This document shows, one piece after another, positions 5,078 through 48,529 of a stretch of 64,000 nt of DNA. How positions within the stretch are numbered: the first letter of the stretch is position 1; each line of letters begins with the position of its first letter. The DNA is from Mytilus trossulus (Eukaryota): assembly GCF_036588685.1 (NCBI RefSeq), contig NC_086378.1, positions 85,126,001 to 85,190,000 of the forward strand, written 5' to 3'. The translations under genes and the position numbers were made by a program. The notes beneath the pieces are model-generated. The model saw only the letters and a list, made by a program, of their open reading frames with translations, was not told where the DNA came from and did no database searches.

Positions 5078-5318
5078 CTAAGAGTAATAACAGTGGTGTA
5101 CTCTGGTTGTGTCAGTTTTCTTTAGATGAGTAAAGTCACTAAGAGTAATATCAGAAGTGTACTTTGGTTGTGTTAATTTCTTTAGATAAGTAAAGTCACT
5201 AAGAGTAATATCAGAAGTGTACTTTGGTTGTGTTAATTTCTTAAGATAAGTAAAGTCACTAAGAGTAATATCAGAAGTGTACTTTGGTTGTGTTAATTTC
5301 TTAAGATAAGTAAAATCA
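5078..5318 (-). repeat. 60-bp tandem repeat (4 units) derived from the last codons and stop of copy 1
   Basis: 60-bp period; the distal unit reads KKTDTTRVHHCYYS*, homologous to the C-terminal KKTERTRIYYCYYS*. Confidence 0.85.
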
Positions 5319-5541
5319 TTAAGAATAATAACAGTAGTATATTCTGGTTCTCTCAGTTTTCTTTGGGTGGCTTCCACCATCGGCACTAGTGTTGTTATGA
5401 ATATCTTCGTCGTCTGTTTTTACAAATTCCTCACGTGCGCTCATTCCACGCACGCGCTGACATAATGTTGATGTGTACTGGTACAAATAGAAGGGCTTAC
5501 TTGTTGGTAATACTATGTTTCTGTAGGAAGATCCATCAGAT
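5319..5541 (-). CDS. Copy 1 ApeC terminal exon D
   Basis: SDGSSYRNIVLPTSKPFYLYQYTSTLCQRVRGMSAREEFVKTDDEDIHNNTSADGGSHPKKTERTRIYYCYYS*; TAA at 5319-5321. Confidence 0.9.
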
Positions 5542-8500
5542 CTATTAAATAGAGATGCAATAATGTGAAATTATTATAAATGTAGACATTTTGGTCTTGA
5601 AATGCATTAAGTGAACATATGTCTGAACTTAGTTTGTTGTAAACTGCAAGTATTTTTACTTTTCTAGTAGTCTGACAGACGTTTTAACCTTGTTTTTTTC
5701 TTTTAACTTTCACAAAGGATTACTTCCTCTTTAATTTTTTTTTTTTTAAGTTTCCTTTGAATTCTCCTTTAAATATGCGACAAATATGTTTTAATCTCAA
5801 AATGTCAATAAAACAAAGACAAGGAAGACAACTTGAGATGTGCACGTCACTTGGACATTATCTGATCATTATCTCAAAGGCAATTATACTGTTCTTCTTA
5901 TTTTGATGTGATTAACAACCATACTAAAGTATTAACATGAGGTATACAGTTTACATACAGAAAAGTTCCTACAAAGAAAGAATGTTTTGAATAATGACTT
6001 CTCTAATTTTCATGCTATTCTCACATTTCCTGACCGGTGTGAGAAAAATATTTCTAATTTTCTAGTGAAAAATTTGTTCTTAGCAAATGATTTGTGGAAA
6101 TTTTATTGTGACGTTAAATTTTCTTTTGTTTCTTTTGAATTTTCACATAAAAAGTACACAACTTTCTTCAAATCTTTGAAAAAAAAGGATAAAAATCATT
6201 AGAGAAACAGATTCCACCACTATTACTCGTGTATTATGATATTTCTCCACTCTCGACAGTTAAATTGTAACTATTTAAAAAGCTCGGCAAGCCTCGTAAA
6301 ACACTTTTTGCAGTTGTGGAATTTATATTTACCTGCAACAGTAGTATATCCTTGTGTTTCTATTATAGGTACCATCTGGAAGAATTCCGTTCTTTGAATT
6401 AGCATTGTTGTGGTCTTCGTCAAACCAATATATACTGCCTGTTCTGAATCCTATACAAATAAATTTGATCTTAATCTTTATATTTGGTAAGGATAAAGAA
6501 TTTTAGAAATCTGCAAGATAAAGTCACGCGTAGTAATTCAATTATCTGTTCAATTACATATTGATACGAACTTTATTTTTCTAATACCTGTTCCATGTTG
6601 GTATTACGCTTTATTGAATAAAAAAAAAAAAGATATACTTAAAACCATTTCAAGCCTAGGTATAACCGCAGGGATATATACATTTTATTGTTATCGTATC
6701 AAATGGTACCATTTTTTTTTATCTTGATACGCATAACGACGATAACAATCTCCTTAGTAATGCATAAAATATTTGAAAAAAAGACAAAAAAACGCGCTGA
6801 TTAAATCGAAAAACATAAACCACTGAGTCGTCACCAATGTCACTTTCGGTTCCTTGATATGGTCATATTAATCAAGTAACTGATTTCTCAACTTTGATAG
6901 TTTACTGACCTGTCCACACAAACAATAACATTGTTGAAACGAAAACCAATTTCAGCTCAACAGTCAGTTCTTCAGTCGTACATGATTTATAATAACCCTA
7001 TCTACAATTGTCTGTTTATAAATTTTGAAATCATAAAGAAACTAAGTTTTCACCTAACACAGGAAAACTTCGCCTGAGATGGATTTGGCTACTTATATCT
7101 AAAATTATGTTCTTTCAGTCATAAAGCTGGTCAATTGTTTCGGTTCTTATAAATCATAGGCTTTTAAATATTTGGCTTTGAGGGTTCCTGGTGAAGGTTC
7201 ACCCAGAAAAGCGCATTGGACGCATGAAATTATATAACGTGTTTTGAATTATAATCCTGGTACATTTGATAACTATCTTCCCAAAAGCCAATAAAAACTC
7301 CGACTTACCAGAAGGACAGGAACCCCCTTTCCTGGCAATACAATAGTTTCCACGTGGCCAGGATCCCGATCCACCATATGTTATTTTGGTACAGTAACAC
7401 AGCTTTGTGTTTCTGCCGAAAATACCTGTTTGTATATAACAGTAAGACGTATATGCAAATTTATTACATAACTTTAGAATCAACTGGACAGTGTCAGATA
7501 CATGTTCACAACTGTCTTTCGAGTCATATCACTTTCTAAGTCTGTTATTTAAATATCATCGTGTTGATATGCCATGATTCCTTTTTTCTTAATCAAACAA
7601 TGTTCAAAGTGATCTGTTTGCGTCTCTTTTTTCAACTTATGTCTATATGTTTTTAATGCTAATGCATTTGTTTTTAATTTTGTTTTGTTTTTTGTATAAA
7701 CGTTGAACGAACAGAAAGCTACAAATAATCGACAGAACTACCAGACACCATAAAATAGCACTCCCAATAATATTTCCCCTTACAAAATCACATGATACAA
7801 AAAAAACAAACACCCAACAACACATTTTTATATATCCAGAGACTTCACTTTAATATATTTTTGTTGATGGTTTGTATGATTCAAATTATTATTCCGATGC
7901 ACATAATTTATAGTTACTAACCCTGTTTGAACAGGTACAAACAGTACATATTAACGTATATCGATGAATCAATCATATTGGATTTTCTAAAAGAAATCTT
8001 TGGATATATTTAATAAGTTATTACATGTTAGATTGCAGTTTTTGAATTGTGCCTTGCAAACTTTTAGCTGTAATTTCACAGATAAAAGTTAGTAAGACTA
8101 TTGAAAAATAATACATCGAACTTACCATTAAAGTGATGGTTGTATCTGACATCGTTCACATTATGTATATCTTCATTATCCTGATATATACATCCTTCAG
8201 CCCATCCAGGTGGACATCCTGATTTTGATTTTGGAAGCGAGTACCTTCCACGTGGCCAGCTCACTTAAAAATTATTTTAGACGGTTACATCATGTTTTAA
8301 CTAACTATAATAGTAGGGCTTATTAAGTTATAAGACTGGTATCGGTGGTGAGTTTTTCATCCACATGATTATATTCCAAAATTTACATTCTCTGAGGTTT
8401 AAATATTTTGCTAAACACAGTTATTGCATTTAAATTATTATTTTGTTCAATTACAAGCATGGCAAACTCGATACTATTCGAATGGCTTACACTAATTCTA

Positions 8501-11500
8501 TAATAGAAATGGATGAAAAGTGCAATATCGCAGAAGCCATAAGACATATGAATATCATTCAGTGATATATGAAATATGAATATCAATTGGAAGATAACCG
8601 TGGTCATCTGAGATATTTTAATATACCCAACCATCCCGATACTGATATCCCATAAAGTTCAACCAACCCGATACTGATAATCCCATTATGGTCAACTAAC
8701 CCGAGATGACGTCCATAAAACACTGAAGTCTAAAATCGAGATCTTAAACATGTTCATCAAAATGAAAAGAAAAACTTATATATACATTTAATAAAATGAT
8801 GGCGTACGGAATGAGTTTCTGGAATACCAAACAAATTAATAATGTAAGAGTGTAAACAATCATGGCGTACGGGATGAGTTTCTGGAATACCATACACATT
8901 AATAATGCAATAGTGTAGACAATCATGGCGCTCGGAATGAGTTTCTGGAATACCATACATATTAATAATGCAAGAGTCTAGACAATCATGGCGCTCGGAA
9001 TGAGTTTCTGGAATACCATACAAATTAATAATGCAAGAGTCTAGACAATCATAACGTACGGGATGAGTTTCTTGATTACCATATACATTAATAATGCAAG
9101 AGTCTAGACAATCATGGCGTACGGGATGAGTTTCTTGATTACCATACATATTAATAATGCAAGAGTCTAGACAATCATGGCGTACGGGATGAGTTTCTTG
9201 ATTACCATACATATCAATAATGCAAGAGTCTAGACAATCATGGCGTACGGGATGAGTTTCTTGATTACCATACATATTAAAAATGCAAGAGTCTAGACAA
9301 TCATGGCGTACGGGATGAGTTTTGGAATACTAGTACCATACACATTAATAATACAAGAGTCTAGACAATCATGGCGTACGGATGAGTTTCTGGAATACCA
9401 TACACATTAATAATGTAAGAGTCTAAACAATCAAACGATATAAAGTATAAAACAAAAATAACATTCAAAGCCTTAGTAGTTGTTTATGCTATATCTGTTT
9501 CTTTATGTCGCCTTTAACCTGAGCGATAAATGTAGTTGTTTATGCTATGTCTGTTTCTGTCTGTCTTCTTTACATACCTATGACACAACCAGCGTTTGAG
9601 GGCCAGTCACAAACATTAATACGCCGGTTCCAGTGTAGTCCAACGGGACAGGGCATGGTATAAGAAATACCATGTCCACATTGTATGAAGGACGAACAGT
9701 CGTATGGATTGGGCAAATATCCATTGATAATTGTACTGCAATCTGAAAAAAATTACAATAACTGAAAACACCCTTCAAATGTTATAAATATTCTGTCATT
9801 GAATTATTAACTCGACTGATCATTTCGTTTAATGTTCTCTTATTACTTGTATAGTTTGATAGTACTTGAATGTTGGTTTTGGTTTTTGTTTTAAGAACTT
9901 AAAAGAAGGAAGTCTTATAATGTAATTCTATTATCTGTAAGCTACCAAAATGAATTAGACATTAAGGTTGTAGAAGTTAGTATAGTTTTAACATACAAGC
10001 GTGAACACAGATCATAGAGAGATCCTTTTTTTCCCACAAGAACTTTCTATGTTGAAATGTGGTGCACAGTGACAGCAATCCTATACCAAACACTAAAAAA
10101 GCAGCGTCTTTTATCTAATATTAAGTTTTAATGTTCAAGACTGTCGTGAAGGAGACACTTTTTTAAATCAGTGTCAATCGTTCATATATTTATATAAGTC
10201 TTATGTAGACAAAACGCGCGTCTGGCGTACTAAATTATAATCCTGGTACCTTAAATAACTATTATTTAAATAAAATTAACTATTGCCATCACATCCGCAT
10301 ATTGGCCAAAATACTATGACTGCATCGTGTAAATAATATGTACGTTCCTGTAATCAAATTTTGTGCATTTCAAACTTTCCATTCGGGAATTTTCTTTCAA
10401 CACTTGGAATAACTTCTTTTTGAATACATAAACATGTTTAACATTGATTCTTTTAAGGGGACACATCTAACTGAGTGGGTTCAAACGCGCTGCAGAGATT
10501 AACGTAAAGCAGAAGCATGTATTGTCAAATGTTTCCGATAAAAAAATTCTGATAGCAGGAAAAGCGCTAAATAAGATGCGGACTTTAGGTGCATTTCTGC
10601 ATGGTGTGATTCTAATATACATTGCATCCAAGAACCCGCAAGCATGTTACATTTATATGATTCTATTTGTGCTCCTTTGTAGTGTTAATTTCATTGTTGG
10701 CCCTGTCCACAAACAAACTGTAAAATCTTTTCAGGATCTTCCCAGTATCATAAGTAAAAAATTGTTCAAATTTCGGAAGTGTTTCTTTCAAGCTATATTA
10801 TGTTTTTAAGTAACAACAGTATACGAGATATGGCAGATACAAATACAGATGATCTTAACTGCTACAACACTCAATGAAACTGATAAAATTTCATATTGAT
10901 CATATACATTCAATCTTCTTCAGCAGGCAACACAGATGTTTAAAAAAGAGTTTTTAAACAACCTGGCATCATATTGCTGGTAGCACAATAATCATTGTTT
11001 CGGTAAATTTGTGTTTTTATGCCCTTTTTATTGGCATTATGTTTTTTTGTCTGTATGTCTGTCCGTCCGTCCGTCCGAGACGAACTTTGAAGGCCGTACG
11101 GTGATATATAATTGTTAATGTTTGTGTCATTTTGGTCTTTTGTGGATAGTTGTCTCATTGGCAATCATACCATATCTTCTTTTTTATATTTAAAGTACGT
11201 TGGGCATTTGTGTTGGACATGTTTATACAAACGTGCCATATATACCTATAATCTTGAAGATGATGTTGATTGTGGTCCTACTGTTATTGTTTTGAGATTT
11301 GACCTTTTAATTTTAAGGTGTAATATGACATTTCAGTGCCTTTTATAAATAACTATGCGGTATGGCCTTTGTTCATTGTCGAAGGCCGTACTGTGACCTA
11401 TAGTTGTTAATACTGTGTCGTTTTGGTCTCTTGTGGAGAGTTGTCTCATTGGTGATCATACCCCATCTTCTTTTTTATAAGGAGATTGACCAACTAATCC

Positions 11501-12508
11501 ACTAATGAGATATTGTAATTCTGACAACAACACACCAAATACTGTTGACGTACCATTACTGGTGTCTAAAACTGAACTTATCAGATTCAGCATATAAATT
11601 AATCAGTGATTTTGGAAATCAGACCCTTATACCAGTATAATGAGATATGCAAATGCTCCTTTAACTGTTTTATAGTACACAACATACCACGTATCATTGA
11701 CTTCCCTTAAGTATTTCTTGTTAAACTAACCAACATGAAAACAGACAGTATTCTCCGAAATCTAACATGTCCAACGAATGCTATAGGCCAAAAACTTGTC
11801 ACTTAAAAAAACAACTTTAAAAAAATGTCATCAATATAAATGTACACAAAGGTATCTGACATGTGTTGTTGGGTTAACAGACACCAGATAAAATAAAAGG
11901 GATATGTGACCATGGGACACAGATGATAACACTACTTGCAAATAAAAGATAGCGGAACAAAACTCAGTAACGGTAAAACTGACACTAGCCAACTGTGTGC
12001 TTAATCTGAATTTTGTGGTATTTAACATTGTTTGAAAGTTTCATACAATTTGTTTGTGGAAAACGAAAGCTAGGGAAAGGAGAAAATGATTTCAGCAATT
12101 TTTCCATTTATAAAGGGTCATAACTCTCGAACAGTAAAGATGAGGCCACCAAAATTCAAACTTAATCAATGTTTTGTGGTAATAAGCATATAAGTTTCAT
12201 AAAATGTGTTTGAGGCAAACGAAATTAAAAGAGAGGAGAAAATAATTCCTTATTTTTTTTCCATTTATAGGGCATAACTATGTCGATTCAAACGTTATCT
12301 GTGTTTTATGTTAATAAGCATTATATATAGCTTTGAGCATTATGTATAAGTTTCATAAAATTTGTTACAGAACGGAAACCAATTTTGGGACATACGGACG
12401 GATATTGGTAATTTTAAATACCCTTCCTTCATGGCCGGTTTGTGTATATGTTATTTGGGAGGGGGTCGGTGTTGACCTAAAACATGTCATCAAATTTTTA
12501 AATAAAGC

Positions 12509-12542
<34 letters not shown>

Positions 12543-12954
12543 GATGACGGACATAAAAAAGAATATCACAATAAAAAAATTTGTTCACTTGCTAGAGATC
12601 ATTATTTTATTTTCAATATGATTATTAAAGTAAGAATTTTAGATGAAGGTATTTCACAAATATTATAGATTATCGCACCGCGGGTATATAATCTCGTAAA
12701 ATTAAAAACAACATGTTTAATAATTTCATGCACCCGTAGCGCTTTTCTGGATTTAATTTCATCAGTTATATATAAGTGAAAAGTAAAATGCTTCTGTTAA
12801 AGGATTCTTTATTCTGTGAAAGATATTGTACAATATACATTCATTAATTACGGTGCATCAATATAAAGTACCTCATATATTAGGAGGAAAATGTACAAAA
12901 CCTACCTGCCCAAACATATTCAATCATCAAGAACAGAATTAACATATTCACCAT
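5319..12954 (-). CDS. ApeC copy 1: secreted signal peptide + CBM14 chitin-binding domain + ApeC (apextrin C-terminal) domain protein, 6 coding exons, 269 aa
   Basis: Exons 12906-12954, 9578-9742, 8126-8263, 7309-7425, 6333-6450, 5319-5541 all have GT-AG borders and join into an 810-nt open frame: MVNMLILFLMIEYVWA-DCSTIINGYLPNPYDCSSFIQCGHG...CDWPSNAGCVI-VSWPRGRYSLPKSKSGCPPGW...QDNED...WPRGNYCI...WFDED...LPDG..YCCRSDG...LPTSKPFYL...CQRVRGM...TDDED...YCYYS*. The motifs match the ApeC consensus recalled from apextrin-like proteins. Confidence 0.9.
6333..6450 (-). CDS. Copy 1 ApeC exon C
   Basis: 118 nt, GFRTGSIYWFDEDHNNANSKNGILPDGTYNRNTRIYYCCR. Confidence 0.9.
7309..7425 (-). CDS. Copy 1 ApeC exon B
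   Basis: 117 nt, GIFGRNTKLCYCTKITYGGSGSWPRGNYCIARKGGSCPSG, CAG/GTAAGT borders. Confidence 0.9.
8126..8263 (-). CDS. Copy 1 ApeC exon A
   Basis: 138 nt, VSWPRGRYSLPKSKSGCPPGWAEGCIYQDNEDIHNVNDVRYNHHFNG, AG/GTAAG borders. Confidence 0.9.
8790..9432. repeat. 63-bp intronic minisatellite (~10 copies) next to the CBM14 exon
   Basis: ACGGGATGAG recurs at 9121 and 9184; 21-aa repeat in ORF 8757-9275. Confidence 0.9.
9578..9742 (-). CDS. Copy 1 chitin-binding type-2 (CBM14/peritrophin-A) domain exon
   Basis: TTTTTTCAG acceptor, G|GTATGT donor, 165 nt, phase 1-1; translates DCSTIINGYLPNPYDCSSFIQCGHGISYTMPCPVGLHWNRRINVCDWPSNAGCVI, with six Cys and the CPxGLxWN..C-DWP signature. Confidence 0.92.
   Translation of the reverse strand: MAVQLSMDICPIHTTVRPSYNVDMVFLIPCPVPLDYTGTGVLMFVTGPQTLVVS
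12509..12542. repeat. (TAT)n microsatellite
   Basis: About 11 consecutive TAT units. Confidence 0.9.
12906..12954 (-). CDS. Copy 1 signal-peptide exon (MVNMLILFLMIEYVWA, phase-1 donor)
   Basis: ATG at 12954, 16 mostly hydrophobic codons + G, donor G|GTAGG; the same 49-nt coding length occurs in copies 2 and 3; an upstream acceptor near 12976 implies a 5' UTR exon. Confidence 0.85.
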
Positions 12955-27979: not shown

Positions 27980-30900
27980 CTACGAATAGTAACAGTAGTC
28001 TACTTTGGTTGTGTCAGATTTACTTGGATGAGTTCCATCATCACTGCTGTTGTTCTGGTTATCCTCGTCATCCATCTTCACAGATTCTTGTTGGACGGTC
28101 ATTCCACGTACACGCTGGCATGTCGATGTATACTTGTACAGATAGAAAGGATCACTTGTTGGGAGGTTAATGCTACTGTATGTTGATCCATCAGACCTAC
28201 GGTAAATAATGTATCGTTTTGAATCATGTATTATAAATAAATTTTAAATATGCCTGAGCATAACATAAAATGCTCGTCTTTCGTTTTAACAAAAGTTTCC
28301 AGTAATGCAAAATCGTGATTAATACATACAGCTGACAGTCTCGTACTTTTATTATTAATCAGGTAATTGAAGAGTTGGTGATTTAATGTCACATACTTTG
28401 CTGAAATTTGTACACAACTATTTATATTTTGTGTTAATACAACAAATAAGTATAACAATTGGTGATAATAAAACTTACTGTGAAAGAAACTTTAAAATCT
28501 CTTTTTCAGGTGATCTCTAATTTTTCCAAAAGAATCATCAATCACTATTGAAACACTTATAATTGTTATTGCAACTTTAATGGTATATTGCAAATTTGAC
28601 ATTGAAATGGCAATACTTCAACTTGTCAACTATGCAAAGCATTTAAAGTCAATAGACCATGTTTTTGGTGTCGGAGTCATATCATTCATACTAAAATATC
28701 ATGTACAAATGTTAATACACCTGCATAACAATTGTTATTCATCTACCTCTTTTATTTGCGTAATAAATAGTATTTGATTTTAAAAAAGGGAAGTGTTTTA
28801 AATATGAATTCATCTTGACTGATGGACTCTGGCAGAATAATATCCACGGAAACGAGATGTACAATGTTTATACAACTACATTACAATATCATTGACTTTA
28901 TACTATTGGGTTCTCGAAAAACTCACCTTATCCAAATGTTATACTATATCGAGACACGTCCTACTTTTTATAAATTTCCGAAGTGTTTTGAACACTGAAC
29001 AGAAAATAACCTTTTGAATAATGACATACCTGCAACAGTACTGTATTTGAGTGTTTCTGCCGTATTCCCCATCTGGGAGTACACCCCATTTTGAGTTGGC
29101 ATTTGCGTTGTCCTCGTCGTCCCAGTAGATTGATCCATTAGAAAATCCTATCAAGAGATATTCATTTCAAACGGTTATGATTGACTGAAGGATATTACAC
29201 CGAAATGTTTACAATCAATTCATTTTGTCTTCAAAGGGATACGGTTGAATAATTTATTATTTGCTTTAACGCTTGTCCAATCATAGTCTGAAAAAAGTAC
29301 AATTGAACTAACCATTCCAAACTATAGAATAGTTGCAAACTTTTTTCAAACAATTCTTTAATGGATATTCATATCAGTACACTAAGGCATTACACATTTA
29401 GATTCAAAAGAGGGTTATTGTGTTTCTTAAATACATGATTTGATCTCCAATTATTAAATTTATTGAGAAAAAATGTAATGCGGTCAAGCAGATGACAAAA
29501 TAATGTTATGATTCCTGAATTTTTATCACTTAGCGTATATAACTTTCATAAATGAAAAATACAGATCTTATTTTAGTACTTACTGTCTCTGTGGTTGATA
29601 CCTTATTGTGACAACCTCACCAAATGCCAATTATTGTATTTAATTATAAATCTAGACGAGTATTTTAGAGAATCGTCTTTTGGTATATATATTTAAAGGT
29701 CCCATCGACCGTTTAATTAAAATCCAGAGCAGGAAATTACCTTTGTTATATTATAGTTCGTGTCTGTGTGTGTTGTATTTTGGTGTTGTGTTTCTGTTGT
29801 GTCGTTGTTCACCTCTTATATTTGACGTTTTCCCTTCCGTTTTAGTTTGTAACCCGAATTTGTTTTTTTTCTCAATCAATTTATTATTTTAAACAGCGGT
29901 ATACTTCTGTTGCCTTTATCTATGTAGCTGACTGTTGGTCAATTTTTAAATTAATCCATATAAAAATTTACACTATGAATGTTTATTAATAAAAAATACT
30001 ATACCTGAAGGACACGAACCACCATATCTCGCAATACAATAATTTCCACTTGGCCAGGAACCTGATCCGCTATAAGTCGTTTTTGTACAGTAACACATTC
30101 TTGTGTTTCTACCAAAAAAACCTAGAAATATAGAAAGGAAAATGAAGGCTGTTTTATCTCCCGAAATTTTGACTACATATGCAAATGTACAATCGACTTG
30201 ATATTTATATTTCTTTTCAATTAGGGAATTACTAGTAATGTGGTTACTTAATGATTCTTATATACCTATATGGAGTTATTTTCTTTCAGAACGTCAGGTC
30301 ATTTTTTTTCAGAATCGACCCGGACGATACCATGTTTCAATGGTATATGCTCCAAGGCATAAAATAATGACCTGTGTAAGGTCATTATCTTCCTTGATAA
30401 ACATGCAATCTATGATTTACTTCAAAATTTTATTCGTCTAATTTTTTTTTGTTGCCGATTTTGAAATTTATTTTCTAAAGTTCAACCGATGATAGATGTA
30501 CAAGAAACCGTCATTGTAGACCCGCAATTTAATTTTAGAAACAAATAACGTGAAGTTTTGTTGATAATAAAGAAACATTATCATATAGGTCAGATGAATT
30601 TTAATGTAGACTTTCATAAAATAAATCCAGATTTGAAATATTCGTGTGTAAGATTTTGAAAATCTTATTGAGTCAAACTGAAAAGGTTGATTGCTTACCG
30701 TCCAGTGGCGAATATTTCATGCATGTTCAGAACGATACACACTGAATAGGAAATCATACTGTGACCTTCATGTATTTATATTCGTCTTCGTGTCAGTTCG
30801 TAACTTTTTCAAATTTATGTATACCTTTTACTCTATCAAATGATCAGCTAATAAAATAATTTTATATTCTATTGAATAACATTAACGTAACCCACGAAAG

Positions 30901-32731
30901 GATCGGGTGCGGAGGGTATATAACTTTATCCTGATTATCTTTTAATAAAATGTATTGCTATTCGAAAGACAATCTTTCTGAATTTTTCATTCGATTCAAG
31001 TAAAATGGTCAAATAAATAAAAACTTTTCCGCGATAGAAATAACATAACAAAACGAAAAAAAAAACATATCCCTCCCCCTTTTCATTAAGCTAAATGATA
31101 TAATAAATAACTTACAATGTGTCTTGTATTTGTCATACACCGTTATCGGATGGTAACAATACATTTGTGTCTTAGTTGTGTTGTCGGTAAAAAAGTATAC
31201 TAAATTTTACAAATCTTTATAAAATTAATATTTTTTTTTGACGGTATATAAGTCAGATAATGCATATTTTAAGTTTTTTTTTGTCGTAGAACACACCTCG
31301 GAGTGTTCTCCGACAAGAAAAATCTTAAAATATGCATTATCTATAACAGATATACCTCTTGTCTGTTCTAATTATTTAATGTTTTTTGTATTGGCGTTTG
31401 TATTTTGTATGGTTTTCATCCATTGAATAATTTCAAGAGGGGAAAATACCTTTGTGCGTGAATCACGTGGACAGGAATTGTTCGCAAAATTATAGAACTC
31501 GTAGGAAAAGGAATCCGAATCAAGTTTTGGTCGAAAATATATATGCTATACTTATACACGCACGTTAGAGTGACCTACATTTGCAAGACCGCAATTATGC
31601 TGGTAACTAATTTATAACTGCTCATAATAGTTTCATGTATAGATAGATATACTCATGACTAACATGACGAAACACTTTGTTTCCAAAAAGATATGCGTGA
31701 GTATAAAGTAGTATGCAATAGTTGCATGAAATACTGATGCACATATTACATTATTACATATAGAAATTTTTGACCATAGGCTATCTTGATATCTTCGGTT
31801 TATTGTATTGTTTGTTTGCTTCAGGAAAGCGCTATAGACGCATGACATTATCAAGCGTTTTTTTTTTTTAATTTTTCTATCACTTTCACATATGTTCCGA
31901 ACGTTTTTGTATTCATTGCAGCTACTTTATGTTTATTAGATCATATAATAACCAATGAAGTAGACTTACCATAGAAATGATGGTCCGGATCTGATGGGGT
32001 AACAGAGTTGATATTATGTGTATCTTCATTGTCCTGGTACCTGCATCCATCTGACCATCCATGTGGGCATCCTGATTTTGATTTCGGAAGCGAGTATCTT
32101 CCACTTGGCCAACCAACTAAAACAAAGATAGACTGATATCCATTGTTCGTAAATATTTCTTCTTATATGTAACATTGGTTCTCACAGAATTATTGTCTGA
32201 TGTGAATTTGATAATATCTAATTATCTAAAAAACTTTATTTCTAAAAATATGAAAAATGGCATTTTCTAATTGGTAGATTCTGAATTTCAACTAAACAAT
32301 GTGAAAAAGATAGCTGAGACAATCTCGTTTTACATAGATTCTCAATATGTGTCTCGTAAAATTTCACCAAAGATATCATGCATCATTCTTATTTGTGTAA
32401 TATCCATTTGATTTAAGTTTTAAATTAGATGAGATGTGAGTAAATGTACACGAAACAATTTCATAGAATATACGTTGTCAGAAAAAAACCAAAAATTGAA
32501 ATGCAACTTAGATGACCATTTCTTTCTGTGGACATTTGAAAGATACCAAGCTGATGTTTTTTTTTGTATCATCAAAATTGCACCAATCAAACGGTTATTT
32601 AAAGTTAAGATGGGCTATGCATATGTTAGATCAAATGGCATATAAAAAAGACCTTAACATTGAAAATTTTTACAAAACTTACTTGCATTAGCAGATGCAA
32701 TCATCAAGAATAGAATAAACATGTTCAACAT
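27980..32731 (-). CDS. ApeC copy 3 (divergent, acidic type B): secreted single-ApeC-domain protein, 5 coding exons, 215 aa
   Basis: Exons 32683-32731 (MLNMFILFLMIASANA), 31970-32116, 30005-30121, 29030-29147, 27980-28196; GT-AG borders, 648-nt open frame; probable 5' UTR exon donor near 33019-33020. Confidence 0.92.
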
Positions 32732-33558
32732 ATTGAAATGTTCTTGACTTGAATCAAAGAATCTGTAAATATTAAATGTAGAACACATAAGATGTGTTAT
32801 TTACATTGTAATTATTCTTATTTAACAGTGTCGTCTTTGTTGAATACAGTTCAGAAAACGTTATTGTAATAATCATTTTGTGAGTCATAATGTTGATGCT
32901 TTTAACTATTAATGAATTTTAATTGTTAAAGATTAGTAAAAAATATGAAAAAGAAATATTCACAACTCTTCATAATTAATACAAACGCAACAGTCTCATT
33001 GAAATATTAAGATACATACCTCAAGTGACCTGATCTTCAACAATTGACAGATTGATTTTACTTGAGAAAAAGTGCAACTAAATAGTACGTTTTGACCAAT
33101 AAAAAATCAAAGGAAATTAAACCTGCTGCGTCAATCTATGATGAAATAATAAAACATTTGTTGATTGTTTATGACCTTGCGTGTATTACGCAGAGAAACA
33201 AAAATAAAATAATACCATACTATATCGAAGAAAGCACTTGTAAACACCCTTGGTTTTTTTCGATGTTCTTGCGTCTGAGACTTTGTGTTTTGTTTACTAT
33301 TGTCTTTTTGTCTTCCGTTTAATGCCATTGCGTCGTCCGGTTATCTTAGACTGATATTTTGGTATCTGTCACCTCTTTTTGGAAACATAATCGTAGAGTA
33401 TATTCGTTTTAGTAATATTTACATTATTCTAATGTATGCTGGTAATTCCATCTCTAGTGAAAAACAATATACATATTTTGATGAGTAAAATCACTTGAAT
33501 CACCTGCATTTTACAGCATTTGAAAATGATAAGAAATTAATTTATCAACAGCAATTAA

Positions 33559-40333: not shown

Positions 40334-42862
40334 TTATGATGACAACAATTGAAGAGAAGAATAATAACAGTATTGTATTCTGGTTGTCTCAATTTTCTTT
40401 GGATGACTGCCACCATCGGCACTGTAGTTATGAGTATCCTTGTCATCTGTTTTCACGAATTCCTCACGTGCGCTTATTCCACGCACGCGCTGACATAATG
40501 TTGATGTGTAATGGTACAGATAGAAGGGCTTACTTGTTGGTAATACTATGCTTCTGTAGGAAGGTCCATCAGATCTAGTAAACAGAGATGCAATGATGTG
40601 ATATTATTATAAATGTAGACTTTTTTTGTGTTGAAATGCATTAAGTCATTAAGTTGAAACAATGTCTGAACTTTTTTTTATAATTTCTTTTTTGATCAAC
40701 TGGAAGTAAACTTATGTTTCGTGGAGTCAGACATACGTTTTTAATTTGTATTTTTTCCGATCTTGTGAGTTAAGCCTTTTTCATTTTTTCAACTGATTTT
40801 ATAGTTCGTTCTTATGTTGTACTGTGAAACCACTGTCCCAGGCTAGGGAAAGGGTTGGAATCCGGCCAACATGTTTAACTCCGCCACATTCTGTATGTAT
40901 GTACCTGCCTTAAGTCGGAAGCCTGTAATTCAGTGGTTGTCGTTTGTTTGTTTGTTACATATTTGGTTTTTCGTACATAGATTAGGCCGTTAGTTTTCTC
41001 CTTTAATTTTTTGTAATAGTCATTTCAATGCCTTTTTTATAGCTGATTCAAGCGATATGGGCTTTGCTCATTGTTGGAGGCCGTACGGTGACCCATATTC
41101 GTTAATTCTGTGTCATTTTGGTCTCTTTTCTAATTGGCAGTAACACAACATCTTCTCTTTATCTTATTATAAAAAAAAGTCAAGGATAAAATTGAGAATG
41201 GAAATGGGGAATGTGTCAAAGAGACAACAACCCGACCAAATAAAAAACAACAGCAGAAGGTCACCAACAGGTCTTCAATGAAGCGAGAATTTCCCGCACC
41301 CGGAGGCGACCTTCAGCTGGCCCCTAAACAAATATATACTAGTTCAGTGATAATGAACGCCATACTAATTTCCAAATTGTACACAAGAAACTAATATAGA
41401 AATAATACAAGACTAACTAAGGCCAGAGGCTCCTGACTTGGGACAGGCGCAAAAATGCGGCGGGGTTAAACATGTTTGTGAGATCTCAACCCTCCCCATA
41501 TACCTCTAACCAATGTAGAAAAATAAACGCATAGCAATACGCACATTAAAATTCAGTTCAATAGAAGTCCGAGTCTGATGTCAGAAGACGTAACCAAAGA
41601 AAATAAACAAAATGACAATAATACATAAATAACAACAGACTACTAGCAGTTAACTGACATGCCAGCTCCAGACTTCAATTAAACTGACTGAAAGATTATG
41701 ATTTCATCTTGAGATGTGCACTGTCTGATAATTATCTACAAGAAAAGCGTACTTTTCTCCTTTTTTATGTGATTAACACCAATTATAAAGTACTAACATG
41801 AGGTCGGAAAATTACATAAAGATAAATTCTTATAAAGAAAGAATGTTTTGAATAATGATATACCTGCAACAGTAGTATATCCTTGTGTATCTATTATAGG
41901 TTCCATCTGGAAGAATTCCTTTCTTTGAGTTTGCATTATTGTGGTCTTCGTCATCCCAATATATAATGCCAGTTCTGAATCCTTAAAAAGAGATTTTTTT
42001 TATCTGTTATTATTACATTTACAATATTAAAGAATTTTCGACAGTCACGTGTTAACACTTATTATCTGTTTTATTACGCTTTGACACGAACTTTCTGATT
42101 CTACAAGTATTTTTGGGTTAAACATATTTTATTTCGGTACACCGCTTCATTAAATCAAAAATGAAATGCGAAATGTTTAAAACCATTGCAAGCCCTGTGA
42201 CAACTGCTGGGATATTACTTTTAAGGAAATTGTATCAATCAATTTCTGTTTTTTTTAAGCATTTTCATTTATGCCATGTCACATACGATTCATTGATATG
42301 GTCATATTTATCAAGAATTTTAATAGTCTACCCATACAAACAATTACATTTAGGTAATGAAATAAAATTTCAGCTCAACAGCCAGTTCATCAGTTTTGAC
42401 ATGATTTATATTTTTATGATTTTAAGGTGAAACTCTATAGAAATATTGAATCTTAAATCTTCATAATAATCCTATCTAAAATTGTCCGTTGATAAATTTT
42501 GAAATTATAAAGTAACTTAGGTTTCATTTCCCTCAGGAAAAGCAGGTCTTAGATGGATTTGGCTATTTATTAGGGTCTTTTCGGTCATATAGCTCTGCCA
42601 TTGTTGTGGTTCTTATCAATCATTGGATTCAAATATTTTTTTTTAGCCTTGCCGATGAAAGTTAACCAGAAAAGCGCTTCAGACGCATGCAACTATAAAA
42701 CTTTTGGTTTTATTAATTTTCCGAAAGCCAATAAAACTACAGACTTACCTGAAGGACAGGAACCTCCTTTCCTGGCAGTACAATAATTTCCACGTGGCCA
42801 GGATCCTGATCCACCATATGTTGTTTTGGTACAGTACAGCTTTGTGTTTCTGCCGAAAATAC
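40334..42862 (-). pseudogene. ApeC copy 4, 5'-truncated pseudogene (only exons B, C, D remain)
   Basis: Exons 42749-42862 (Cys codon deleted, KL-YC), 41864-41981 and 40334-40574 (TDDKD; original stop lost by a 5-bp deletion, extended by SLQLLSS*). No signal or exon-A copy was found upstream: intron homology stops near 43075 and upstream-flank homology resumes near 45128. Confidence 0.8.
41185..41710 (-). repeat. Abundant dispersed repeat family 2 (other copies at ~25408-25720, 34770-35095, 57785-58170, 61480-61915)
   Basis: Shared core GGTTGAGATCTCACAAACATGTTTAACCCCGCCGCA...CCTGTCCCAAGTCAGGAGCC. Confidence 0.8.
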
Positions 42863-43413
42863 CTGGTGGTATATAACAGTAAGTCGAATATGCATATATA
42901 TCACATTATTTTAAAATCATCTTGACAGTTTCGAGTATATATAGAAAAAACTTTCTTTCGAGTCATATCTCGGTCTAACTTTGTTATTGAAATATCGTCG
43001 TGTTAATTTGCCATGATTGTTTTTTATCAAACCATGTACAAAGTGATCGGTTCAAGAATGATTCCAATTTATGTATATGCTCTCATCATAGCTACCAGGA
43101 TTAAATTTTGTTTTTACGCGCGTTTCGTCTACAAAAGACAACTCTCCACAAGAGACCAATATGACACAGATATTAACAACTATAGGTTACCGTACGACCT
43201 TCAACAACGAGCAAAGCCCATACCGAATACTGAGCTTTAAAAGGCCCCGAACTGACAATGTATTTAACAATTCAAACCATAAAACTAGCGGCCTAAATTA
43301 TGTACAAAAAAATGAACGAAAAACAAATATGTAACACTTAGACAAACAACAACCACTGAATTACAGGCTCCTTACTTGAATGTTCATAACATACTAAATG
43401 TATGTTCTCATTG

Positions 43414-44722
43414 CGAAGCAAGACATCTCGGCACATTACAAACTCGGGACATGTTAACTCGGCATACTGTAAACTCGGCACATTACAAACTCGGCATATT
43501 ACAAACTCGGTACATTCATAATAAAAATGTATCAGATTTATTATTGTGCCAATAAAGACTAATCACTGCAGCCAATACAAAGAATGACATTTTTATTTGT
43601 CGTTAACTTTTCATTTAGTGTCTGTATGGTATTTATAGAGAGATTTTGTGTACATAATCTGTTTATATATATGTAATTACTCAATGGAAAATACTTCATT
43701 GATAATAAACGTTCTTGTCAGTTGATTGTGCTGCTTTTTATCAATCATTTAAAAAAGGACTACACATAGTTTTACTACATGTTACTCCAATTAAAATACA
43801 CTGATGACACAATAAAAATAAGAGATGCATGGTATCAACCAGTAAGGAAGAAACCTAACAAAAAAGACTGATTGATAAATATAAGATATGGTTTGATTGT
43901 CAATGAGACAACTCTCCATTGCAAAGATAGGTTCTTATTGAAAACTATCATATTTGATGAAACTACTAATCTATTGCGATGGTGATACTAGAAATAAATC
44001 ACTGAACTTGATATATTTAAACGAAATCATTCGAATATGGAAAACTCCTCAAATCTCAAACACTTTTAAATCTTTCTATTTGCAACTATATCACCCGAAA
44101 GACATGTAGAAACGGCCAACCGTTTTCCTTCCTTAACATAATGATGTGTCGTCATTTTTTATAACTATCTATCAGTTATAGAAGAGGGACGAAATATTCC
44201 AGAGGGACAGTCTAGATAAGCAAAAAACGAGGGCAACACTTTTGCCTAGGTAACTGCATCACCTTAAATACACATAGCATATATCAATGACCAGGAAAAA
44301 ATGAATGTAGGACAGAAAGTCAAAGAACAAAAAAAGTCACAGGAAAAAAATTACAATTAATTTGGAGACATTTGTTTGAATATATAACAGAAAGATCTTG
44401 CAATGTTTTCTTTTTAATACAAAACACATTTTTTTTTATATCAAGTGACACTGTTTTCTTATTTATGTCACAAAACTATATATAACTTGTGACTTTTTGT
44501 CCTATAGTTTGTTCCATTTCTCAACTATTTAAAAAAATAATGTTATCTTTTTCTCATCGTAATTATTATATAAAATTTCTTTTTATGAACCATTGCCATA
44601 AATATATTCATTGGTGTGCCGAGTTTGTATAGGTAATGTGCCGAGTTTGTATAGGCCGAGTTTGTACTATGCCGAGTTAATACATGTCCCGAGTTTGTAG
44701 TGTGCCGAGATGTCCTGTATTC
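43414..44722. mobile_element. Non-autonomous Mutator/MULE-like element with long repeat-rich TIRs and 9-bp TSD
   Basis: TTCTCATTG at 43405-43413 and 44723-44731; ~100-bp TIRs built of AAACTCGGCA subrepeats. Confidence 0.85.
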
Positions 44723-46399
44723 TTCTCATTGAAATTGATAGAAAACAAAAAAATGGGAACATTGGAAATAAAGGAAGAGGGGTAAAAAAAAAGCATTTTC
44801 CTGTCCCCAATAAGAGGAGGGATATGACCTTCATCGGGACTCCGGGATCGGGTGTTTTTAAACTACGAATTTCTGGATTGCCCCTTTCGGGATCCAATAA
44901 TTCCTTTTTTTTTAATTTCGGGACCTCGGGATTTCGTTTTTTTTAAGCCTGGGATTTCGGGATTTCATGTTTTAAAGCCCGGGATTTCGGGATCAGGATC
45001 CCTCCTATCCCGGCCCCTCCAATAACCTTTTTTCCAGTCCTTTAAAATTTTACAAAATTCTTCCAACAACAAATTACATACTTTAAACTACGCTCTGCAT
45101 GCCCGCGATTTCGCGGGTGTGTTCTAGTTTTCTTGATTATGCATCATTGTGTTTTGTTTTAAAAGTTTTGTTCATAATACCTGTGTTGTAGTTGTTATGC
45201 TATCTAAAAAACTTAACTTATTTACGTAATATCTTTTCTTTTCTTTTCTTTTGGGAAATTGGTATAATAGTTGTCCTTAGTGATTATATATTTTTTACTT
45301 ATTTATGCTTCAAGCATTTATCATCAAAATAATGTTATTTGGGTATACTTTGTATTAAAATCAGGCATTTGGAGAAAGGACTTTTATTTGGTTTTATTAT
45401 ATATTCATTTTTAAATTATGCTTTATATTTTTATTCAATGGTTTTTGCTATTTACCTGATCACAAACTTATCAACTATTTTTTTATTCAAACGTGACTGC
45501 TGGGTCTTTAGACTGGCGCAAATTCAAAATAATTATCTCAGGGTAATCAAGTTCAAGTCATTTGATAGATGCTCTACTTGTTATGTAAAAGGTTTGAAGA
45601 AGCAAAAAAAAAGGAACAAGAGTCATTTGCTTGCACACATTCGCATATTTGAAAAAAATAGTTAAGTGATTTTTATTCTAAAGTAAGGGTTTTTCCTCTC
45701 AATGTTGAACACGAAACAAGCTGTTTATTATTTCCGTTATTGTACATCTTTATCGTCAATAAGTTTGTTGTCATTTAATTTTATAACATGTATATTATAC
45801 AAAAAATTATGCTTCTAATTGGATGTGACTGCAACCGCAAAACAAGAATAACTTAAAGACACCTAGAGGACAACAGATAATCTAAACAATTATTTTATGA
45901 ATACAAACTGTATATGCCAATTTCTATTGTCTATTTTGTTTTTGCATAAGCTTTATATGTATTATGTCTTCCGAGTATTTCAATTTTTTTCTTTACAGGA
46001 TATTTAAAGTAGGCGAATGCAATATATCCTTTTTAGGTAACTTTAGATGTTGAAGTTAAGGGAAAGTAGTGATATTTTAAGGTTGATAAGTTCAAAATAT
46101 AGTATGTCTGAAGAGATGTCATACTTAATTATAGATTTCTTTAACAGGAATCGTCCATAGTTTTAATAAGAGATTGTACACATCTTTTTGAGATAAAGCA
46201 GGAGCGATTTCTTTAAATTAAATTAAATATTACCTTGGAACAATATAACAGGATTTAAGAAACGTTTAAATAAAAACCTCATTACCTCACTTAGAACATC
46301 CAAGGGCTAAGATAAACTGCTCCATAATATAAAATTTAGTACATCACAATTGTGATAAAGGATTCAATTGCTCTGCAGTTAGATTTTCAACAAAAACAG

Positions 46400-46812
46400 A
46401 CGTGGATATCAACAAACATTCCGACCCGTGGTATGCCAGAAAATGACAAACCTGTTTATGATTATCTTCAGATATTACTATTCGGTCATCATTGTTTCCC
46501 TATCCTTTTCATTTGGCATTACTTGAAAACCCGAAAGCCTTAGATATCTTGAAACATGAACAAAACCAAAATGCAGTATTCAATATGTAGGGTAAACTGA
46601 ACGTAATGTGTCAAACAAACGAACACAACAACATCTATACCGCTTCCGCAGATCTTAAAATTTCCAAATTTTAGTTAAACGATCTTATACCCATGGGCAC
46701 TAATTGTGCCCCTTTAATAGCAGACTTGTTTTTGTACTGTTACAAATCACAGTTTATGACTAAACTCAGTAAAGACCCGTCGAAATTGCATGTAATTGAT
46801 AAATTCAACAAC
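46400..46812 (+). mobile_element. Penelope-like retroelement RT fragment
   Basis: IPMGTNCAPLIADLFLYCY RT motif near 46687; related degenerate sequence at ~27090-27480. Confidence 0.65.
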
Positions 46813-48529
46813 ATTTTTAAATTATGCTTTATATTTTTATTCAATGGTTTTTGCTATTAAACTGATCACAAACTTATCAACTATTTTTTTATTCAAACGT
46901 GACTGTTGGGTCTTTTGTAGACTGGCGCAAATTCAAAATAATTATCTCAGGGTAATCAAGTTCAAGTCATTTGATAGATACTCTGCTTGTTATGTAAAAG
47001 GTTTGAAGAAGCAAAAAACAAAAAAAGTTAAAAAGTTTTTCAAAGAGTATCTGAAATATATAGTTAATAAATATAGTTAACCAAATATGCAGCCATAAAA
47101 AAAATCGTTTCAGTTTTCAAGGATTCGACGTGTCACTGAGTTTTCTTAAAATGAATTCAAACTTTCTCAATACAAGATACCTTTTTATATAATATAGTTA
47201 TTGGAGTTTGATAACTTACTCAATTAGTGCAAGCGTGTTGTAGAACAAAATCCTAAAATTGAGACATGACCGTTATGGTATCTATAATGAGTTTATTTTC
47301 ATACCAAATGAAACGTTGAAAACATTATAGCAAATTAAAATATAGTTACCAAATATTACCAAAATACATTTCCATGATATTTCCTTACAACTACCTACAT
47401 TTTGACAAAAACATAAGACCCTGCTCCTTGCAAACACGTGCTGCCTGGCATGTTTTCCCACTTACATGAACAAATTAGATCTTGTAGAAAGTCCAATGGC
47501 ATTTGTCCCTCAAAGAAAACTGGCTCTAACTTGTCATTTTGCGCAGTTTTCCAACAAAGGCACATGGGGAGCCATTATTTCGGTTGGCTAGATTTGCCGA
47601 CAACCAAACTTTGCTTTGCCACATTGTACGTAGTACGTGTTGCTTAAATACGAATTCACATGCCGAAAGCTTTTCGTTTGAATTGTTTTACATTGTCTTA
47701 TCGGGGCCTTGTATAGCTGACTGCGGTATGGCCATTTGGGCTTTGCTCATTGTTGAAGGCCGTAAGGTGACCTATAGTTGTTAATGTCTGTGTCAGTTTG
47801 GTCTTTTGTGGACAGTTGTCTCATTTGCAATCATACCACATCTTCTTTTTTATATTATAAGACTTTTATCTTTATTTATAGCCAAGTGATGTCTCCGCAA
47901 ATTTAAATCGTTGTGATAATTCTTAAATTTGTATTTCGAGTCGTATAAAGCAGCTTCAAGCACTCTAGCAGCAACTACAGCACTATCAACATCATGCATT
48001 AAGGCTACAAGATTACCGAAACGGCTTGGTTTTGTCCTAAAGAGGTTGAATACCGACTTTTAATACATTCCAAAAAAAAACTTGAAGTGGAGTCACAACC
48101 ACCAGAGCATGAATGACCGGCATAATCAGACTTTAAATGGAGTAATTATGTTATTACAATTTGACACCAGGCACTCTGCGAGAGTAACACATTTTCTCAA
48201 AATATCATGCGAAATATTCATTGATACTGAAAAAAAAGGTTTCAAAAGACTTTGTCAAGAGACAAGTAACAAAACTTATCAAACAGGTTGACAACATTGC
48301 TTCTGATATATCCAACGATATGCATTTGTACTTGGTTATTTGCACGATAATAATCCCTAGATATATAAACATTTTCCATATTTTGTAATAAAATATTCCA
48401 AAATTTCCTTTTCAGCTGATACTGATTTTTAATTCTGCTTACTTGTGTAGCTTTTATAACATAACCTATGACATCTTAATACGGGTAATGGAATTGCTGT
48501 TTCATTGCAGAATTCGTTCAAATAACTGA

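Follow-up and report, generated by a model that had tools for sequence, protein, structure and literature searches.

We found that one of the seven tandem apextrin-like genes that form the ApeC cluster of Mytilus trossulus carries, within its first intron, an exon for a complete CBM14 (peritrophin-A) domain. The gene, copy 1, lies on the minus strand of the window, by which we mean the whole 64,000-nucleotide stretch analysed. On balance, we think that copy 1 gained the exon through a composite insert and makes from it a spliced signal-CBM14-ApeC product. The sequence shows a real exon-shuffling gain and, if the exon is expressed, a new ApeC architecture. The features on which this reading is based are as follows.

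12906..12954, minus strand: copy-1 exon 1 coding sequence; start codon ATG and a hydrophobic, signal-like peptide of 16 aa; phase 1 at its end (G|gtaggt)
12759..12905, minus strand: 5' remnant of intron 1, alignable to copy 2
9996..12754, minus strand: dispersed retroposon-like repeat, 5'-truncated when compared with its C12 and C13 copies, its 3' terminus ...CACRCTTGT abutting the exon block
8453..9998, minus strand: exon-bearing block of 1.55 kb, collinear with C6:83476031-83478384, ending ...GCTTGT
9578..9742, minus strand: CBM14 exon, 165 nt, phase 1-1, complete CBM14 (peritrophin-A) domain (Pfam, PDB sequence matches, predicted model, dN/dS)
8795-9433: 63-bp minisatellite inside the exon-bearing block
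8628-8704: 33-bp repeat inside the exon-bearing block
8264..8452, minus strand: 3' remnant of intron 1, alignable to copy 2
8126..8263, minus strand: copy-1 ApeC exon A, phase 1 at both ends, ApeC 28.6 bits
7309..7425, minus strand: copy-1 ApeC exon B
6333..6450, minus strand: copy-1 ApeC exon C, 39.7 bits, altered DXED motif 2 (WFDED)
5319..5541, minus strand: copy-1 ApeC exon D, stop codon included, 65.8 bits

The CBM14 exon and its host gene

Sequence and fold alike identify the exon as a genuine CBM14 module. Its peptide matches Pfam CBM_14 (PF01607) over profile positions 1-53 of 53 (E 5e-16, 59 bits; gathering score 22.1 bits) and scores 57.5 bits in a profile scan of the whole genome. 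A chance ORF at 9742-9578 was rejected, the Pfam match being far beyond chance. CBM14 domains follow the Cys consensus CX13-20CX5-6CX9-19CX10-14CX4-14C, which the six Cys of the exon satisfy with a spacing of CX13CX5CX9CX12CX7C. Positions C15, C21, C31, C44 and C52 are invariant across 10 genomic paralogues of the exon, and C1 is found in every paralogue whose N-terminus was sampled. The peptide also matches PDB chain sequences in a sequence search, and its predicted model (pLDDT 87.6) fits Avr4 (4Z4A) with TM 0.83 and rmsd 0.7; CHIT1 CBM14, chitin-bound Avr4 and tachycitin are further fold matches. The six-Cys spacing is like that of tachycitin (1DQC), CHIT1 CBM14 (5HBF/6SO0), Avr4 (4Z4A/6BN0) and Aplysia EHEP (8IN3), modules with which the exon has a common fold (TM 0.71-0.83), and the Trp after Cys5 is common to the exon and known CBM14/peritrophin-A modules. 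The Pfam score of 59 bits and the predicted fold bear out the initial annotation, which had read the six Cys as a CBM14/peritrophin-A module. In the cases known, CBM14 is combined with the catalytic domains of chitinases, with additional CBM14 repeats or with mucin-like linkers; ApeC was not found among the cases retrieved.

On the minus strand, the exon is bounded by an acceptor at 9743/9742 (tttttttcag|AT) and a donor at 9578/9577 (ATAG|gtatgt), and its reading frame contains no stops. With seven T followed by CAG, the acceptor is stronger than that of ApeC exon A. The signal exon of copy 1 ends in phase 1 at 12906 (...GCA G|gtaggt) and ApeC exon A starts in phase 1 at 8263 (ag|TG AGC), so that splice sites, open frame and flanking exon phases all confirm the proposed 165-nt phase 1-1 exon in frame with both neighbours. 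Such phase 1-1 exons are the usual encoding of CBM14 modules in animal genes. The frame is kept either way: inclusion of the exon gives an 810-nt coding sequence for 269 aa, and skipping gives 214 aa. From its symmetry (phase 1-1 in a phase-1 intron), its orientation, which is that of the ApeC gene, and the good splice sites on either side, we infer that the exon joins the signal exon to the ApeC exons in the mRNA. This would yield a secreted protein of 269 aa with a chitin-binding module directly ahead of an ApeC domain of the peptidoglycan-binding type.

When Pfam was run exon by exon, CBM_14 and ApeC both lay above their cut-offs, exon A scoring 28.6 bits against the ApeC profile (PF16977; cut-off 26.5). 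In the genome scan, ApeC scores were 27.1 bits for exon A (1-51), 39.7 for exon C (92-134) and 65.8 for exon D (133-208). The 16-aa N-terminus is signal-like by hydropathy alone and has an acidic residue (Glu) in its hydrophobic core; between 9743 and 15400, only 12906..12954 is a signal-like, phase-1 first exon with a good donor. With the exon included, the ApeC domain follows CBM14 and not the signal peptide directly. Conserved Cys and three DXED motifs are features of ApeC-containing proteins (PMC8361754). Copy 1 keeps the Cys and motifs 1 (DNED) and 3 (DDED), and its motif 2 is FDED, a copy-1-specific D-to-F change. The altered motif 2 and the acidic residue in the signal peptide core were counted against the favoured reading. 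The ApeC exons of copies 1 and 2 differ with a dN/dS of 0.12, and purifying selection is shown on both the CBM14 exon (see below) and the ApeC exons of copy 1. Swapping of first exons occurs within the ApeC cluster.

The composite insert and the donor-like locus

The initial annotation had described an insert of about 4 kb in mid-intron, with both intron ends still alignable to copy 2. This was upheld: segments 12905-12759 and 8452-8264 can both be aligned with copy 2, and between them ∼4.3 kb (12758-8453) stand in place of ∼237 bp of copy-2-like ancestral intron. About 2.75 kb of the inserted block is a dispersed retroposon-like repeat, which had been overlooked. Members of the repeat family end in ...CCACACTTGT, followed by divergent A-rich tails, and the C12 and C13 copies reach at least 850 bp further 5' than the copy in the window. 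No Pfam profile matched the RT-like ORFs of the C12 copy, which is the longer one, and the element is unclassified.

The proposed genome search for the exon and its flanks led to a donor-like locus at C6:83.476 Mb, 1.66 Mb away, which carries the only close paralogue of the CBM14 exon. C6:83476031-83478384 is collinear with window positions 9998-8453; the exon and its intronic flanks are common to both, with 88% identity in the exon and 70-86% in the flanks, and the canonical donor splice site is conserved. This homology stops at 8453, precisely where homology to copy 2 begins. Within 30 kb around 83.476 Mb, tblastx and tblastn revealed neither a further coding exon in common nor an ApeC exon; the sole lead to a donor gene is a candidate signal-like first exon at C6:83473755-83473824.

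These junctions suggest that a composite DNA segment, made of a 5'-truncated retroposon-like repeat directly followed by a 1.55-kb copy of the locus 1.66 Mb away, was inserted into the phase-1 first intron of copy 1. The transfer may have proceeded by retroelement-associated 3' read-through, by a template jump or by microhomology-mediated repair at CTTGT; this mechanism is the least certain part of the explanation. L1 3' transduction was reportedly described as a form of exon shuffling by Moran et al. in 1999. The insert resembles such transductions and RT template-switch chimeras in its 5'-truncated element with an intact 3' end, followed by an unspliced, exon-bearing foreign piece lying in sense orientation within an intron. 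Unlike L1 3' transduction, however, there is no source element upstream of the donor-like region (no repeat copy is found upstream of 83476031 at the present locus), and the insert borders show no poly-A and no clear target-site duplication, with at most a 4-nt AATT overlap.

Distribution, age and selection of the exon

As proposed initially, the exon has no counterpart in copies 2 and 3, whose first introns (520 and 566 bp) contain no CBM14 match. In fact, none of the other six cluster genes has a CBM14 exon, and genome-wide the window exon is the only CBM14 match within 20 kb of an ApeC match. Proteins were searched for ApeC with three successive queries, a paralogue's open frame of 141 aa, P0151 and P0181, which listed ∼195 other ApeC proteins of 122-453 aa (longer models lay outside the listing), including RefSeq and transcript-derived (Logan, MMETSP) entries. 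PF01607 was present in none of them, which is compatible with a derived state. Among these proteins, M. trossulus RefSeq contributes only copies 4 and 5; the listing has no entry of this species for copy 2, for copy 3 or for any version of copy 1. A 54-aa exon query against protein representatives returned no ApeC-like sequence among its best 150 matches, where multi-CBM14 proteins dominate and leave the result uninformative. A published survey of 130 mollusc ApeC-containing proteins (ACPs) distinguished nine architectures and recorded a chitin-binding module in none (PMC9585378).

In a tree built from the concatenated exon peptides of each gene, which also served to polarise changes, copy 1 groups with plain copies 2 and 4. 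The outgroup consists of plain 213-aa signal-ApeC proteins of M. coruscus and M. californianus, which have no CBM14. Window copy 3 groups with Mytilus galloprovincialis nacre apextrin-like protein 1 (support 99/96). Since the exon is absent from the six other cluster genes, the outgroup proteins and the ∼195 ApeC proteins, it is a gain.

The initial annotation had called this a recent exon-shuffling gain. The gain holds, given the insert, the sister copies lacking the exon and the donor-like locus; its recency does not. Synonymous divergence of the exon from its 83.476 Mb paralogue (dS ∼0.42) equals that of copy 1 versus copy 2, and the insert flanks diverge from that locus by 0.15-0.39. Because both values match the age of the copy 1/copy 2 duplication, the gain is, as judged from these divergences, as old as that duplication and not recent. 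A fusion as old as dS 0.4 would be expected in M. edulis and M. galloprovincialis as well; no CBM14+ApeC protein was seen in either among the ApeC proteins listed.

The exon and its paralogue differ by 11 synonymous and 8 non-synonymous substitutions (dN/dS 0.157, binomial P-value 5e–4). Polarisation of the paralogue alignment by hand assigns 2-4 non-synonymous changes to the window lineage, against ∼9-15 expected under neutral evolution at the rate of the flanks. The exon has kept all six Cys and both splice sites while its flanks accumulated ∼0.25 substitutions per site. The dN/dS of 0.16 argues for translation of the CBM14 exon; the sign of selection would be less marked should the exon derive from a third donor copy that is now missing.

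Alternative readings and possible roles

The exon might be not spliced, or only negligibly so, leaving copy 1 an ordinary 214-aa signal-ApeC gene. This would fit the lack of CBM14+ApeC among the ∼195 ApeC proteins, RefSeq, Logan and MMETSP entries included, but it sits poorly with the dN/dS of 0.157 and the few non-synonymous changes on the window lineage, with Cys and splice sites that outlasted ∼0.25 substitutions per site in the flanks, and with an acceptor (seven T, CAG) stronger than that of exon A. We regard it as unlikely. Alternatively, the exon might serve another product: a short signal-CBM14 peptide terminated within the downstream intron, if this is retained, or a separate nested transcript. 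Two codons, Gly-Met, and a stop follow directly after the donor (ORF 9570-9716 ends ...CVIGM), tachycitin is an example of a single-CBM14 peptide, and first exons are known to be swapped within the cluster. Yet the insert holds no independent signal-like first exon, the canonical donor is conserved with the 83.476 Mb paralogue, and the phase match with exon A would be a coincidence, which makes such a product improbable. That the exon belongs to an independent nested gene with a signal exon of its own was rejected, since no signal-like first exon lies inside the insert.

An ancestral CBM14-ApeC form, with loss of the exon from the remaining copies and species, is highly improbable. All that speaks for it is how old the exon pair is (dS 0.42); against it stand the absence of the exon from 6/7 cluster genes and from outgroup orthologues, the sharp insert junctions, transposable element included, in an intron otherwise alignable to copy 2, the lack of a second CBM14/ApeC neighbourhood in the genome, and the absence of the architecture among the 130 mollusc ACPs (PMC9585378). 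An ancestral CBM14-ApeC was rejected on distribution and insert anatomy. Just as implausible is an assembly artefact in which repeat and block were mis-joined into the intron: one insert border is indeed repeat sequence, but the transitions at both junctions are clean and fall in unique sequence, the window contains no N, and the block is 12-30% diverged from its only paralogue, hence not a collapsed duplicate.

Under the favoured reading, a gained and spliced exon, copy 1 probably encodes a secreted chitin-binding ApeC protein of a sort not described before. More tentatively, if the exon is spliced constitutively or in certain tissues, this might be the first ApeC protein known to contain a chitin-binding module: a secreted dual-ligand lectin of the nacre apextrin-like family, for chitin and peptidoglycan-type ligands, created by a retroelement-associated transfer of an unspliced fragment bearing the exon. 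ApeC alone binds Lys-type peptidoglycan, with weak or absent chitin binding, and the genes for the short-form relatives belong to the tandemly expanded 'group 1' type of bivalves (PMC9585378). Like oyster CgACP1, snail BgACP1 and amphioxus ACP1/2, copy 1 is an ApeC-containing protein of the short form; these have no other domain, whereas copy 1 has a CBM14 module between signal peptide and ApeC, and FDED as motif 2.

ApeC is a promiscuous immune and matrix domain of invertebrates. A CBM14-ApeC gene beside plain sisters offers a ready comparison for the effect of an added chitin anchor on an ApeC lectin, be it on shell/nacre incorporation, on tethering to gut or gill lining, or on fungal recognition. 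Moreover, the preserved donor-like locus and both junctions document module transfer between genes in a bivalve genome with rapid gene turnover and, if the reading is true, retroposon-linked exon shuffling in a mollusc with junctions still legible. Both domains and phase 1-1 exon shuffling are already well known, and no new class of system is involved.

The copy-1 protein may bind chitin and act at chitinous matrices such as the nacre/shell framework or the gut/gill lining. We consider a role in the shell or chitin matrix at least as likely as fungal recognition, by analogy, because the gene family is that of a Mytilus nacre apextrin-like shell-matrix protein, a kinship that the initial annotation had missed. 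This relative, M. galloprovincialis nacre apextrin-like protein 1 (P0231), is 216 aa long, has a signal peptide of 16 aa and occurs in the acid-soluble matrix of nacre (PMC4517812). It belongs to the same cluster family but is a copy-3-type paralogue, not the orthologue of copy 1, and, unlike copy 1 with its CBM14 exon, has no chitin-binding domain. BMSP carries VWA domains; BMSP-like proteins have other partner domains than copy 1 and no homology to it beyond the chitin-binding module. The BMSP-like nacre proteins of Mytilus are secreted and have a chitin-binding domain, and such modules anchor proteins in the shell framework (PMC4517812).

The CBM14 exon and its host gene

Seven tandem ApeC genes (PF16977), all on the minus strand, were found in the window extended by 10 kb at its low-coordinate side and 30 kb at its high-coordinate side. 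A CBM14 (PF01607) match is present in copy 1 only. The exons considered for copy 1 are:

12954-12906, minus strand: signal exon, ATG and 16 hydrophobic codons, then G/gtaggt, phase 1
9742-9578, minus strand: CBM14 exon, 165 nt, phase 1-1
8263-8126, minus strand: ApeC exon A, preceded by AG, phase 1
7425-7309, minus strand: ApeC exon B
6450-6333, minus strand: ApeC exon C
5541-5319, minus strand: ApeC exon D, stop codon within

The CBM14 exon is bordered by an acceptor tttttttcag/AT and a donor ATAG/gtatgt; its frame, begun one base ahead of the exon, holds 54 whole codons without a stop. As the initial annotation held, its phases agree with those of the signal exon and exon A. The resulting coding sequence is 810 nt (269 aa), versus 214 aa without the exon, and the frame is kept either way. 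The peptide carries six cysteines spaced CX13CX5CX9CX12CX7C and matches Pfam CBM_14 over profile positions 1-53 of 53 (E 5e-16, 59 bits, cut-off 22.1), and exon A matches ApeC (28.6 bits). A PDB sequence search with the peptide returned Aplysia EHEP, a nematode chitinase CBM14, tachycitin, Avr4 and human chitotriosidase. The AlphaFold model, with ten genomic paralogues as alignment (pLDDT 87.6), superposes on Avr4 (TM 0.83, rmsd 0.7), with further structural matches to the CHIT1 CBM14, chitin-bound Avr4 and tachycitin. Together, profile, PDB matches and predicted fold identify the module as CBM14, upholding the original reading of this six-cysteine exon. In the genome scan for ApeC, exons D, C and A of copy 1 scored 65.8, 39.7 and 27.1 bits. 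The copy 1 3' UTR (5078-5386, minus strand) contains a tandem array of about four 60-nt units that stem from the final part of the coding sequence and create a spurious 102-113-aa open frame.

Origin and age of the insert

Intron 1 of copy 1 aligns to the 520-bp intron of copy 2 only at 12905-12759 and 8452-8264. Between these ends, 4.3 kb stands in place of about 237 bp of copy 2, which bears out the proposed mid-intron insertion of ~4 kb. It has two parts:

12754-9996, minus strand: dispersed repeat with thousands of partial genomic matches
9998-8453, minus strand: exon-bearing block, collinear with C6:83476031-83478384 (C6 is the contig carrying the window), 1.66 Mb away

Repeat copies on two other contigs, C12 and C13, reach at least 850 bp further 5', and the window copy is therefore 5'-truncated. 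It stops exactly at the family-terminal motif (...CCACACTTGT), which in 8 of 11 copies examined is followed by unrelated A-rich sequence. Truncation at the 5' side with a fixed 3' end is how a non-LTR retroposon behaves. A longer copy (C12:32625270-32627881; positions 5270-7881, plus strand, of fetched stretch L043) has about 3.3 kb of extra sequence with ORFs of 394, 251 and 219 aa, including a YLDD box. It may be an unclassified reverse-transcriptase-bearing element; a Pfam search of these ORFs gave no family at E 0.01.

The block and the 83.476 Mb locus share the upstream flank, the exon (88% nucleotide, 85% amino-acid identity), the downstream flank, one 63-bp repeat unit, the 33-bp repeat and the final 200 bp. 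The 63-bp minisatellite (8795-9433) has ten copies in the window versus one unit at that locus, and the 33-bp repeat (8628-8704) has 2.4 copies versus dozens, opposite shifts since the transfer. The match ends at ...GCTTGT (8453), the copy 2 match begins at the very next base, and CTTGT recurs at the repeat/block junction. At the 83.476 Mb locus, the interval from -10 to +20 kb is free of ApeC exons and the upstream side lacks a copy of the repeat; hence, the window is the recipient. An intact CBM14 exon lies there, with three partial duplicates of its 3' half arrayed in tandem behind it (C6:83476313-83476740, plus strand; fetched stretch L024:313-740), each with a gtatgt donor and two of the three with stop codons. 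The 30 kb searched around it yielded no further coding exon except a candidate signal-like first exon (C6:83473755-83473824). Retroelement-associated transfer, by read-through or template jump, would fit the insert geometry, and so would microhomology-mediated repair. No source element, poly-A or target-site duplication was found for the insert.

The exon is missing from six of the seven cluster genes and from outgroup orthologues. In the maximum-likelihood tree, copy 1 is placed with copies 2 and 4 (support 91/82), the next branch is an M. edulis sequence, and the outgroup consists of plain 213-aa signal-ApeC proteins from M. coruscus and M. californianus (100/99). Genome-wide PF16977 and PF01607 scans found both families <20 kb apart only at copy 1, a lower bound since 150 of 299 CBM14 candidates were scored; among those scored, the next-nearest pair is 237 kb apart. 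PF01607 occurs in none of roughly 195 public ApeC proteins returned (122-453 aa). A survey of 130 mollusc ApeC proteins lists nine architectures, none with a chitin-binding domain, and no such term appears in its text or supplement (PMC9585378). Our literature search found no paper naming both 'ApeC-containing' and 'ChtBD2'. These absences point to an exon-shuffling gain in copy 1, as first proposed.

The claim that this gain was recent did not survive. The exon and its paralogue differ at 19 of 165 nt (11 synonymous, 8 non-synonymous; dS 0.42, dN 0.065, dN/dS 0.157), a split departing from the neutral site ratio (binomial p 5e-4). Flanking introns diverge by 0.15-0.39 substitutions per site, and the ApeC exons of copies 1 and 2 give dS 0.41 and dN/dS 0.12. 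By these values the transfer is about as old as the copy 1/copy 2 duplication, and copy 1 has been kept under purifying selection. Copy-specific ApeC changes are few on copy 1, five versus seven on copy 2; one of the five turns D into F in DXED motif 2.

Transcript inclusion and predicted function

Inclusion of the exon in at least some copy 1 transcripts has somewhat better than even chances, to judge from its genomic setting. Orientation and phase agree with the host, exon A has the weaker acceptor of the two, the splice sites are kept in common with the paralogue, and the stretch up to the next gene offers no second signal-like first exon in phase 1 whose donor is usable. Polarised by eye against more distant paralogues in the alignment, two to four of the eight amino-acid differences fall on the window lineage and four to six on the other; under neutrality the window lineage should carry about 9-15 changes, as estimated by hand from the 128 non-synonymous sites and the rate in the flanks. 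This paucity is the main argument for translation at the present location, and would weaken if the true donor were a third, since lost copy. It also bears against a silent intronic passenger, a reading that we consider rather unlikely. Still less probable is another product, such as a signal-CBM14 peptide closing Gly-Met-stop in a retained intron, which would make the phase match to exon A coincidental. M. trossulus RefSeq proteins were recovered for copies 4 and 5 only; copies 1-3 have none in any form among the public ApeC proteins returned (122-453 aa), a gap for which the length filter, absent models or fused models may be responsible.

In CgACP1 and BgACP1, the ApeC domain binds Lys-type peptidoglycan, and it binds chitin weakly or not at all (PMC9585378); copy 1 differs from them by the predicted CBM14 between signal peptide and ApeC, which would confer chitin affinity on its product. 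If expressed, CBM14-ApeC would be a new architecture inside a known, promiscuous family. Copy 3 (27983-32736, minus strand) groups with M. galloprovincialis nacre apextrin-like protein 1 (P0231; support 99/96) and is probably its orthologue, which connects the 'immune lectin' genes of this cluster with the proteome of the shell matrix. That protein (216 aa) is in the nacre acid-soluble matrix, and chitin-binding-domain proteins occur in Mytilus nacre (PMC4517812). A predicted role in attachment to the chitinous framework of the shell is thus no less plausible than one in recognising chitin from fungi or arthropods.

Neighbouring ApeC copies

Copy 4 (40337-47565, minus strand) is without signal exon and exon A, and its exon B is one codon (a conserved Cys) short. 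Its RefSeq model (LOC134723085, protein P0233, 190 aa) has an unrelated first exon (47565-47464) and no signal peptide; copy 4 resembles a paralogue in decay or one that has been re-wired. The own signal exon of copy 5 has the splice donor G/GA, not G/GT. Two signal exons lie past the window end:

L039:3837-3879 (fetched stretch; window-equivalent 67879): signal exon, copy 5
L040:4147-4195 (fetched stretch; window-equivalent 78195): signal exon upstream of copy 6

In RefSeq, the copy 5 protein (P0176, LOC134723086) begins with a signal peptide whose coding sequence lies about 10.7 kb away, upstream of the degenerate copy 6, so that copy 5 seems to have captured the first exon of its neighbour. 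The public M. edulis model P0181 (259 aa) joins exons of a copy-3-like gene to exons C-D from a copy-2-like one, an artefact of annotation spanning two tandem genes and a caution for architecture surveys of the ApeC family.
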